This document shows, one piece after another, positions 15,101 through 18,100 of a stretch of 64,000 bases of DNA. The DNA comes from Macrostomum hystrix. Its lineage: Eukaryota > Animalia > Platyhelminthes. The stretch spans positions 3,472,001 to 3,536,000 of the forward strand of contig CATNEN010000029.1 of the NCBI GenBank assembly GCA_950097015.1. Reading direction: 5' to 3'. Each line of letters begins with the position of its first letter. Positions within the stretch are counted from its first letter, which is position 1. Below the pieces are notes generated by a model, which did no database searches, was not told the origin of the DNA, and worked only from the letters and a program-made list of their open reading frames with translations. Both the position numbers and the translations under genes were made by a program.

Positions 15101-18100
15101 CCACCTGTTACACTCAGAAAGCCAAGCGGTTTGTGCACCAGGAAGGGAGAGAGGCTCAGAGTGCAAGCCCTCCCGGATTTCCCATATTTGTACCCGCGCT
15201 TTCCGCCACGCAAAGTAGACTTCAAGCGCACTGGCTGCCTGGAGCCGTAAAATACAAAATCAGAGACGAAAACAGACAACAAACAGGCCAGACCAGACTG
15301 AGGTCCCTGGGGAGCAGAATTTCAAGCTTTGTCGAACAGCTAGCTCTTGGGTTTGCCTGGTCTAAATATATGCGTTGCTATGCGTAGGAAATTGTGCCAA
15401 CTTACTTAGGAAATACGCAGCGGAGCTGCAGCACTAATAGTTCCACTGTACAGCCGTGCCTTCTGTGCCAGTCTGTCTGCTACATCTGTGCCAGTCTGTC
15501 TGCTTCCTGTGTGCCAGTCTGTCTGCTTCCTCCGGGCCAGTCTGTCTGCTACATCTGTGCCAGTCTGTCTGCTACATCTGTGCCAGTCTGTCTGCTACAT
15601 CTGTGCCAATCTGTCTGCTTCCTCTGTGCCAGTCTGTCTGCTTCCTCTGTGCCAGTCTGTCTGCTACATCTGTGCCAGTCTGTCTGCTACATCTGTGCCA
15701 GTCTGTCTGCTTCCTCTGTGCCAGTCTGTCTGCTACATCTATGCCAGTCTGTCTGCTACATCTGTGCCAGTCTGTCTGCTACATCTGTGCCAGTCTGTCT
15801 GCTTTCTCTGCCAGTCTGTCTGCTTTCTCTGCCAGTCTGTCTGCTTTCTCTGCCAGTCTGTCTGCTTTCTCTGCCAGTCTGTCTGCTTTCTCTGCCAGTC
15901 TGTCTGCTTTCTCTGCCAGTCTGTCTGCTTTCTCTGCCAGTCTGTCTGCTTTCTCTGCCAGTCTGTCTGCTTTCTCTGCCAGTCTGTCTGCTTTCTCTGC
16001 CAGTCTGTCTGCTTTCTCTGCCAGTCTGTCTGCTTTCTCTGCCAGTCTGTCTGGTTGCGAATATTCCTTGCATGCAGCTGGTGGTTCATGAGTCACACCC
16101 AGGACTACATAAGATCACTAGACCCTATACCACTGTGGGTCACAGTGGGTCACAGTGGCAACTCTTTAGCTTTTGGCTCGGAAGAAACACAAATAAATTT
16201 AATGCAGGGCAGCATTGCAGCAACCCAGAAAAAGGACCCCGCAGAAATGTGTAATAAAACTCGCTCCGATTCCTGCTGAGCGAACAAATTTTCACTTTAA
16301 TGCTCCGCTTTGCAACAGCATCCGAAATCTGTTTTTGTATCATTTGTTGAATTTTTGCATGAAATTAAAACCCATGATGTTGACCCTACCGTAGATTCTC
16401 TCTCACTTTGCTTGCATTCAACTATTCAGAATGGGCCATATGTACTTTGCTACAGTCCACCTGCCTATTCTACTATCTACGGGACACTTCGTTTCTTAGA
16501 AAGTTAATTAAAAGCAGATTTTCACGGAAAAATTGCTTTCCGGTCCCGTCCTTCTTCTAGTGGTCCTTGGTGAATATATAGTTGGTTACAGATACACGGA
16601 CAGTAGAATAGACAGGCGGACTGTTGCAAAGTAGAAAGTATAAATTTTCCAAGAAACGAAGTATCATGTCATTATTCTTCTAGTGGTCCTTGATATTCAC
16701 TAGCCTGTCTGCCGATCATTCTTTCAAGCCTTTCATTCTCTCCTATATCTGCCAATCTATATCTATACTGCCTCTTAGTTATCTATTTATCTAAAATCTG
16801 ACCGAGAGGTCGGAGTTCGAATCTCAATATAGAGGGAATCGTTTGAGTGATTCAACAGGACACCAAATTCCTCATTTTCGTCACTTTACTCATCTGTTAA
16901 TAGCTCGCACCGGCGGCACACAACGCCTGTGAGGTATGAGTCAGTCCAGGCCCACGGGCTAAGGTCTGCGATGCCTCACACCTGCAGTCGCTTTTTGAGC
17001 AGGCTTGGCAGGAAGGAGCCCTGTGCCTTCGGGTGCAGGAATCCCTCCACGCTGTCCCGTCAGCTGACCCATGGGTACACGTCCCGCGAGTGTTCAAGGC
17101 TGACCCTAGGGTAGCCGGACAGAATGGGCAACAGCGCTGGATGACCCATCCAGGGCCTCCGCCCAAACTGGGTACCTCTAGCCCCGGCTGGAGGGAAAGG
17201 TGTCACCCTTTGACCTCAACAGGGTATGCGGCCAGTCCGCAGCTTTCGTGCACCTGTGCGTGATCAGGTACCTCTGGTTACGGCTCTGAGGGAAAGGTGT
17301 CCCCCTTTGACGTTAACAGGGTACGCAGGTTAACTGCGGGTCTGGCGCTGCTTTGTGCCGCCCTCTAAGGCCCAAGGTCTCGCCGTGCCGAAGGGCGCTT
17401 GGCCGGGGAGTAGTCCGGTCTTTAGCGGCTTCTTTTTATTTCTTTTCTCTATTCATGTGAGTCACCGCTTTCAGCAATGGCTTCTTCTGCCCACTCTTAT
17501 AAAGAAAATGAAACCGGGAACCACCCGGTTGCTCCGGCCGCTTCCAACAGCGCCAATGTCGCCCCATGGGAGGCTACCGGGCCCGCTGCGCCCTGTCTGA
17601 CGGAAGATCTGTCCCCGGACCTCTAGGCATCCGGTCCAAGGGAGCCCGTCACGGCCGTAACCAACGCCGCAACGAGCGGCGTCGGCGGCAGCGTGAAAGG
17701 GTGGCCGCGGTTCGGCAATCCGCGGAGGTGGTGCCTCAAGTGGGCGAAGGAGCGGTTGGGCCGAAAGGAGCCACCGCCACCTTAGCCCCTCGGGAAACCG
17801 CCTCCGCGGGGTCACCACCCGCCGAGCCCACCAGCAACACTAACACCGGCAACGTGGCTGGGCCATCTGGAGCCGCAACACATGCAACGATGGCGAGCGG
17901 GGCCCCGGCCAGCCAACCATCTACCAAGGCCAAGAAGTCCTACGCCTCCAAGGCCAGTGCCATGCTCCAACCCGCGGTCATCGTTTTTGGGGAAGAGCAA
18001 GACCTCACGGCCGAGCAGCTCGACAGTGCCTGGCGCATCATCGACGCTGCGCTCATTGACCAGCTCCTGGCAGGCCGCCCGGTGAGCGTGGTCAAATCGG

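Follow-up and report, generated by a model that had tools for sequence, protein, structure and literature searches.

Repeated exchange of a near-identical 5' leader among deeply diverged LINE lineages in the flatworm Macrostomum hystrix

RESULTS AND DISCUSSION

A near-identical 5' leader on two diverged elements

The genome of the flatworm Macrostomum hystrix contains long interspersed nuclear elements (LINEs) whose 5' ends are far more alike than the proteins encoded downstream. We analyzed a window of 64,000 nucleotides (nt) of this genome (assembly GCA_950097015.1, contig CATNEN010000029.1, positions 3,472,001 to 3,536,000, forward strand; coordinates below count from the first letter of the window). 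The window holds two such retrotransposons that lack long terminal repeats (non-LTR elements), E1 (16903-21818, plus strand) and E2 (56310 to about 50078, minus strand). Both open with a leader, here called the cassette, which consists of a 233-nt head that reads as a hepatitis delta virus (HDV)-like ribozyme and of head-to-tail 97-nt monomers in varying copy number, followed by a lineage-specific tether. The cassette heads no fewer than four, and probably five, LINE lineages that diverged deeply, were active recently, and belong to one group that encodes an apurinic/apyrimidinic endonuclease (APE), a reverse transcriptase (RT), and RNase H. It has been exchanged repeatedly between these lineages, with breakpoints inside and at the edge of the high-identity tract. 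The resulting recombinants have propagated, and donor and recipient were active at about the same time.

The contrast between leader and body is already apparent from the two elements in the window. When E1 is compared with the reverse complement of E2 by blastn, 16903-17321 aligns with 56310-55892 over 419 nt without a gap and at 95.5% identity. The initial annotation of this stretch had reported 8 differences in the first 233 nt and high identity running to about 17330, and both statements hold up. A direct count gives exactly 8 differences (positions 15, 21, 43, 77, 82, 103, 210, and 211), and nearly all bases differ from element position 420 onward, which places the break at 17321-17330. 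In the window-by-window comparison proposed with that annotation, the break is sharp: successive 100-nt windows are 95, 99, 96, and 94% identical within the cassette and then 59, 50, 28, 46%, and so on beyond it. Within the shared stretch, E1 17171-17326 matches the E2 monomers at 89-91% identity. Downstream, blastn identity between E1 and E2 is 71.5-73.3% for the DNA of open reading frame 2 (ORF2) and about 64%, in patches, for the ORF1 region. The protein divergence estimated by eye in the annotation (roughly two thirds identity in the endonuclease and less in ORF1) agrees with tblastn of E1 against the E2 type, which gives 64-68% over the endonuclease and the region after it and 44-46% over ORF1. 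All comparisons reported here set natural copies against natural copies.

Cassette-bearing copies across the genome

Genome-wide counts were made over the 220-Mb assembly, in which a 32-nt ribozyme-core pattern has 166 matches and its reversed control has 0. Of these roughly 166 copies we read 37, drawn from 30 loci of 3.4 kb and 20 loci of 9 kb, among which some overlap, with E1 and E2 added. Body types were defined by clustering the 800 nt that follow the monomers and were fixed before any tree was built, with the following outcome.

Type A: E1 and 6 other copies
Type B: E2 and 10 other copies, in subtypes B1 and B2
Type C: 8 copies
Type D: 7 copies
Four singletons: L034, type A by its junction; L006 and L042, type C by theirs; and L046, a rare fifth lineage

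Junction-specific patterns occur 11 times (A), 14 times (B), 49 times (C), and 39 times (D) in the genome. Among the 37 copies, the cassette, that is, the head with 1.5-8.6 monomers, is present on the four deep body types A-D and on the rare fifth. The L046-type junction has 2 occurrences in the genome. The L046 element itself (301-2860) has the cassette and its own covarying terminal hairpin, and then only the C-terminal ~370 residues of ORF2, which are 40-60% identical to those of B, C, and D.

Deep bodies and a shallow cassette

Between types, ORF2 proteins are 60-74% identical, with a saturated synonymous divergence (dS) of 1.5-2.4 and a ratio of nonsynonymous to synonymous divergence (dN/dS) of about 0.12-0.17; each lineage has therefore long evolved under purifying selection. 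Over the first 415 nt of the cassette, the same types differ by 0-5.8%. Mean cassette differences between types (3.0-3.9%) are barely above those within types (2.0-2.8%), and the ranges overlap. Synonymous divergence in the ORFs as low as that in the leader would speak against exchange, and the values found are far apart (1.5-2.4 in ORF2 versus 0-6% in the cassette).

The lineages are also young at their tips. Within types, copies are up to 99-99.9% identical, terminal branches are below 1% in all four types, and full-length open ORF2 is found in types B, C, and D. Since copies diverged by less than 1% occur in all four types and ORF2 is open in three of them, the families have been active together.

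Conflicting trees and recombinant copies

Separate phylogenies of the 5' module and of the bodies, the check originally proposed for an exchange, are incongruent over the 37 copies. In the maximum-likelihood cassette tree, type A and type C are each rejected as a clade (approximately unbiased test, p 0.005 and 0.023), and one well-supported cassette group (98/92) contains four A and four B copies together with L034. When body-type labels are placed on the cassette tree, 12 changes are needed versus a minimum of 4.

Individual copies illustrate the exchange. The type A copy L003 and the type C copy L002 are identical through nt 352, after which their ORF1 regions cannot be aligned; the break lies at the last hairpin of the monomer array. 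The type A copy L010 differs from E2, of type B, at 3 positions in 328 nt. Conversely, the type D copies L036 and L049 have bodies that differ at 5 of 1,500 nt (99.7% identical) and cassettes that differ at 12 sites within nt 21-237, so that here the breakpoint lies inside the head, between cassette nt 156 and 237. A young subclade of type A bodies, A2 (L010, L014, L017, and L018), carries a B1-type cassette. A different cassette haplotype, present too on C copies and on L046, is found in the sister of this subclade, L043, and in the older copies E1 and L003. As four or more A2 copies share the B1-type cassette, the recombinants themselves must have amplified. Subtypes B1 and B2 (L035 versus L040) are 84-95% identical in the 5' untranslated region (UTR) and ORF1 and about 100% identical over the last 2.5 kb, and therefore sublineages have recombined inside the coding region as well. 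Where identity allows, exchange thus extends beyond the cassette.

The cassette belongs to the element and ends at a hairpin boundary

In both E1 and E2, target site duplications (TSDs) enclose the first cassette nucleotide (G1) together with the 3' tail. The same holds for 12 of 15 further copies, from types B, C, and D; a clear repeat was not found in the remaining three (L044, L036, and L031). The two TSD copies of E1, one at each end, imply that cassette and body were inserted as one unit. The junction between cassette and body is constant within each type and falls at the same monomer position across all types. None of the 37 sampled copies is a solo cassette.

In every type, the common sequence stops just before the hairpin that closes the last monomer. 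The internal monomers of A and C copies have a common hairpin, and only the last hairpin is lineage specific. A second hairpin follows ~10 nt beyond the terminal one (17324-17338 and 17344-17362 in E1; alignment columns 58-73 and 80-100). Across the two hairpins, both sides have changed in 6 of 11 pairs, and pairing holds in 95.9% of cells versus 32-55% in slid controls, in a test whose structure was derived from the very sequences tested. These observations suggest a conserved RNA structure at the cassette boundary, with compensatory changes among five LINE lineages.

Past the hairpin, the tethers of A and C can be aligned at roughly 70% for about 100 nt, and across lineages the next ~50-100 nt after the junction are homologous and anciently diverged. 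Together with the constant junction, this homologous but anciently diverged tether indicates that the position of the leader is ancestral, whereas the sequence upstream of the hairpin is young. In its canonical form, the junction of A and C copies is found immediately 5' of the last hairpin. In a variant that occurs 3 times in the genome, the crossover falls inside the hairpin loop, and L003 has a 4-nt microhomology joint located 14 nt further into the monomer.

One other source of a common 5' sequence was considered. The monomer contains AG|GTATGC, a candidate site for a trans-spliced leader on LINE RNAs, and this was rejected, as the rest of the monomer, including the hairpin, is kept downstream in every type.

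The ribozyme-type head and the monomers

By inspection, segments of the head can form the nested double pseudoknot of HDV type, with P1, P2, P3, P1.1, and P4. Its parts are as follows, in E1 cassette numbering.

P1: nt 1-6 with 184-189, closing pair G1.U189
J1/2 insert: nt 7-160, 154 nt, which folds by itself at -68 kcal/mol
P2: nt 166-170 with 222-226
P3: nt 171-173 with 181-183; the loop L3 is nt 174-180, 7 nt
P4: nt 196-214
J4/2: nt 215-221, GGACAGA, which holds the candidate C

The ribozyme core is near-invariant across the 37 copies, with about half the variability of its surroundings, and 35 of the 37 begin with GCTCGC. In all copies with a clear TSD, the duplication adjoins G1, which fits cleavage directly 5' of P1. 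Searches against Rfam gave 0 matches at the gathering score over the whole window and 0 at an E value of ≤10 over 16880-17160. Because no Rfam model matches, the assignment of the head to the HDV-like self-cleaving type remains a sequence-based reading. The 154-nt J1/2 insert may be the cause of the failed matches, and HDV-like ribozymes with large J1/2 peripheral domains are known (PMC4908430). The copies are too alike to give a covariation signal for the head pairings.

The 97-nt monomers number 3.8 in E2 according to Tandem Repeats Finder (TRF), about 1.6 in E1, and 1.5-8.6 across the 37 copies. By analogy with other LINE 5' UTRs, they may act as a promoter.

Route of exchange and alternative explanations

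Part of the original interpretation stands: the common history of the 5' module is much younger than that of the ORFs, and recombination or template switching has carried the module from lineage to lineage. What does not stand is a single swap between two subfamilies, as exchange has recurred among at least four, probably five, deep lineages and within them. The suggested likeness to the capture of a foreign UTR by mammalian L1 also fails, given the same junction position in all lineages, the homologous diverged tether, and the compensatory hairpin changes. The data instead fit repeated homogenization of an ancestral leader.

We are highly confident that the cassette has been exchanged repeatedly between lineages, whatever the route. 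An RNA-level route is, in our judgment, more likely than not. Near the end of target-primed reverse transcription, the RT would jump from the RNA of one lineage to that of another, inside the sole region where the RNAs of the lineages are still alike. The new copy would thereby acquire the 5' end of the other lineage, and such recombinants would then amplify. Repeated exchange of this kind would keep the cassette 94-100% identical between lineages, and homogenization would reach no farther than the 3' edge of the last monomer, the point at which homology runs out. By cutting the RNA precisely at G1, the head would define its 5' end, and the monomers would form a control region of variable copy number that works as a promoter or as a translation element. 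We favor the RT jump because both parents are necessarily expressed, because the microhomology joint fits, and because the same model is favored for simultaneously active mouse L1 families (PMC3600994). Taken whole, with an ancestral communal cassette, repeated exchange, and this route, the account is probably correct. A broader generalization is offered more tentatively, at slightly less than even confidence: at least five co-active lineages may keep a communal leader interchangeable through ongoing template switching that ends at the hairpin boundary, which would amount to concerted evolution between competing genomic parasites.

Several points weigh against this account. The ribozyme has no Rfam model behind it, and its cleavage is a prediction from sequence. 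A promoter located 3' of the ribozyme cannot alone account for transcription of the ribozyme, which needs a start at or upstream of G1. The evidence for exchange is sampled from 37 of about 166 cassette-bearing copies, and that the lineages are older than the coalescence of the cassette is judged from the genome of one species. Cassette haplotypes were named once the variable sites had been seen; the body types, however, had been fixed beforehand. Finally, sequence alone cannot separate exchange at the RNA level from exchange at the DNA level.

This last point bears on the strongest alternative, in which the same recurrent exchange proceeds by ectopic gene conversion or unequal crossing-over between genomic master copies, with the identical cassette and its tandem monomers as the seed, producing new chimeric masters. 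Tandem monomers in 1.5-8.6 copies are a good substrate for unequal recombination, and breakpoints within or at the edge of the homologous tract are expected of any homology-driven process. However, a DNA-level event would have to hit a copy that is both transcribed and retrotransposition competent, and only part of the population qualifies (an argument summarized in PMC3600994). The microhomology joint of L003 is more like a polymerase jump, and the families that share the cassette are young at the same time. We consider a DNA-level route rather unlikely, and serious enough to be kept in view. A single recent swap or capture involving only the subfamilies of E1 and E2 would explain that pair taken by itself (95.5% identity in the cassette versus 64-73% in the ORFs). 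It is very unlikely, and already contradicted, since the cassettes of E1 and E2 are of two different haplotypes, other cross-type pairs are closer (0 differences for A-C and 3 for A-B), types C and D and the fifth lineage have the cassette too, and well-supported branches force several independent incongruences.

Two further explanations were weighed. In the first, the cassette would lie outside the LINEs, as an independent leader element or a preferred insertion target, with the bodies placed next to it by nested or site-specific insertion. In its favor, unrelated bodies do have the same upstream sequence, and about 50 of the 166 ribozyme cores have no assigned junction type. We regard this as highly improbable, as the TSDs enclose cassette and body together, the junction is constant per type and at the same monomer position in all types, and the 37 copies include no body-less cassette; the two odd cases, L034 and L042, have normal A and C junctions, and their interruptions lie farther downstream. 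A nonautonomous, cassette-only family was likewise rejected, with only 2 occurrences of the L046-type junction and no solo cassette seen. Least probable of all is strict vertical inheritance under extreme purifying selection on every base of ribozyme and monomers. The ribozyme core is indeed less variable than its surroundings, and conserved 5' termini of divergent L1 families in lizard, frog, and fish have been ascribed to host-imposed constraint (PMC5381506). However, vertical inheritance predicts congruent trees and fixed type-specific differences, whereas the cassette tree rejects A and C as clades, identical cassettes stand on bodies with saturated dS, and near-identical D bodies have cassettes about 5% apart.

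Comparison with known systems

Monomeric 5' UTRs and mosaic families are known from L1 of mouse and rat (Sookdeo et al. 2013, PMC3600994; Zhou & Smith 2019, PMC6454616, citing Saxton & Martin 1998). As in those elements, tandem monomers in variable number stand upstream of a nonrepeated tether and ORF1, and 5' termini pass between simultaneously active families. Recombination elsewhere in the element is a further likeness, and RT strand switching has been proposed there as well, under a model that requires simultaneously active families (PMC3600994). Whereas mouse L1 families are a few percent apart, the lineages described here differ to the extent of 60-74% ORF2 protein identity and saturated dS. 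In mammals, coexisting lineages are reported to have different, nonhomologous promoters, whereas here at least four coexisting lineages have one cassette. Further differences from L1 are the RNase H domain, the (TAAGTC)-type tail in place of poly(A), and the ribozyme-type head. Sequence features (RNase H, a non-poly(A) tail, and no confident domain in ORF1) suggest an architecture unlike that of mammalian L1.

The L1 elements of lizard, frog, and zebrafish (Boissinot & Sookdeo 2016, PMC5381506) resemble the present system in that each genome holds many old lineages and 5' ends are more alike than ORFs. In those vertebrates, short motifs or alignable UTRs are kept, which was ascribed to constraint, with no evidence of replacement (PMC5381506). 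By contrast, the cassette here extends over 350-1100 nt at 94-100% identity, with trees that show exchange. In trypanosomatids, the Pr77/L1TcRz signature of L1Tc, NARTc, ingi, and SIDER likewise places a 5' sequence with an HDV-like ribozyme on different retroposon families (PMC3383444, PMC4035085). RNA processing and promoter function have been proposed together for Pr77 (PMC3383444, PMC4035085), much as suggested here for the cassette. Unlike the cassette, Pr77 measures 77 nt, lacks a monomer array, and has been conserved across species through common descent.

HDV-like ribozymes at the 5' ends of non-LTR elements are described for R2 (PMC3774820) and for large drz ribozymes (PMC4908430), with an exact 5' end and a TSD next to the cleavage site, which is also the layout predicted here. 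The large ribozymes are known as well for a structured insert between P1 and P2, comparable to the present J1/2. In another flatworm, Schistosoma mansoni, twister-variant ribozymes head Perere-3 (PMC8501958). The R2, drz, and Perere-3 papers describe one ribozyme per element family, and no cassette that moves between deeply divergent families is mentioned in the portions consulted.

Ribozyme-headed LINEs, monomeric LINE 5' UTRs, and interfamily 5' transfer are thus each already known (PMC3774820, PMC8501958, PMC3383444, PMC6454616, PMC3600994). The novelty lies in their occurrence together in a single system, in how deep the lineages are, in the near-identity of so long a cassette, in the explicit evidence for reticulation, and in the contrast with the proposal of different promoters for coexisting lineages. 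Transfer of rodent L1 5' UTRs is known only between families a few percent apart, and in mammals such transfer has been tied to the idea that lineages coexist only with differing promoters. If true, a communal leader would be a direct counterexample to the view that coexisting LINE lineages need different promoters. The system offers many independent natural recombinants with mapped breakpoints, a defined homology edge, and a leader of 350-1100 nt that is base-for-base identical in places, and it could serve to test whether RNA strand switching or DNA conversion underlies LINE recombination. Further questions that it could address are whether a leader built of ribozyme and repeats works as an interchangeable functional module and whether the sharing of host factors prevents coexistence.

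Layout of the two elements and accompanying observations

The features of E1 and E2 in the window are listed below, with the basis of each in parentheses.

16893-16902, plus strand: 5' TSD of E1, TCTGTTAATA (identical 10-mer at 21819-21828, straight after the (TAAGTC)-type tail)
16903-17135, plus strand: E1 cassette, part 1, HDV-like ribozyme-type head, 233 nt (complementary segments in HDV order)
17136-17323, plus strand: E1 cassette, part 2, linker that includes a degenerate first monomer, followed by ~1.6 monomers of 97 nt (match to E2 monomers)
17324-17362, plus strand: boundary, lineage-specific terminal hairpin 1 (17324-17338) and hairpin 2 (17344-17362) (cross-lineage alignment)
17363-21818, plus strand: E1 body, type A (tblastn against type B, C, and D proteins; broken ORFs; 3' end read directly)
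21819-21828, plus strand: 3' TSD of E1, 10 bp, TCTGTTAATA (read directly)
50078-50518, minus strand: E2 frameshifted ORF2 tail, 3' UTR, and (TAAGTC)-type tail (blastn; 3' end read)
50519-53890, minus strand: E2 ORF2, with AP endonuclease, reverse transcriptase, and RNase H, 1123 amino acids (aa) (Pfam; comparison with L035)
53887-55467, minus strand: E2 ORF1, 526 aa from the ATG homologous to that of E1 (ORF comparison)
55679-56077, minus strand: E2 linker and 3.8 monomers of 97 nt (TRF: array 55679-56042, period 97, 94% matches)
56078-56310, minus strand: E2 ribozyme-type head of the type B1 cassette (blastn versus E1; 5' end read)

Part 2 of the E1 cassette is the final stretch that E1 holds in common with other lineages at high identity. 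The ORF1 remnant of E1 starts with the ATG at 17477, and its ORF2 remnant occupies about 19029-21698. An internal deletion of ~1 kb near 20280 has removed ORF2 residues ~420-756, the reverse-transcriptase core, and there are further frame breaks. A TAAGTCA-type tail closes the 3' UTR of E1. E2 is likewise not completely intact: relative to its 99.6%-identical sister copy L035, it has lost 1 nt near 50673 (minus strand), which cuts ORF2 to 1123 aa from the 1233 aa of sister copies. An upstream in-frame ATG at 55647 would extend E2 ORF1 to 586 aa. In types B, C, and D, ORF1 has no confident Pfam domain; in E2 ORF1, DUF4780 scored below its cutoff. ORF2 combines APE, RT, and RNase H, and a protein atlas places it only among generic APE-RT-RNase H LINEs, with no clade name.

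E2 lies inside a 28-bp satellite (56316-56600 and 50040-50078; 10.2 copies, 94% matches), which supplies its duplicated target. Satellite sequence resumes past the 3' tail of E2, giving a TSD of about 10 bp, and the 5' junction has extra C residues in a run.

Both E1 and E2 have (TAAGTC)-type tails rather than poly(A). In all lineages, the 3' ends (for example, 21800-21818 and L035:6495-6534) read ...CCCTGC(A/C)G(A/C)TAAGTCAAGT-type tails, with (T)AAGTC units in variable number. This short 3' signature is common to all types, yet there is no other homogenization at the 3' end, where the 3' UTRs are only 60-80% identical between types.

Some cassette-bearing copies are interrupted by other sequence. 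L034 (1470-9001, type A) and L042 (955-2917, type C) have normal cassette junctions, and other sequence interrupts them soon downstream. Long ORFs in that interrupting sequence have no confident Pfam domain, with a TIP49_C-like match in one L034 ORF. In L043 (1729-6096), a 5'-truncated type B copy is nested in the type A element; it is 98% identical to E2, has an open ORF2 of 1233 aa, and is flanked at both ends by a duplication of ~18 bp of the host element.

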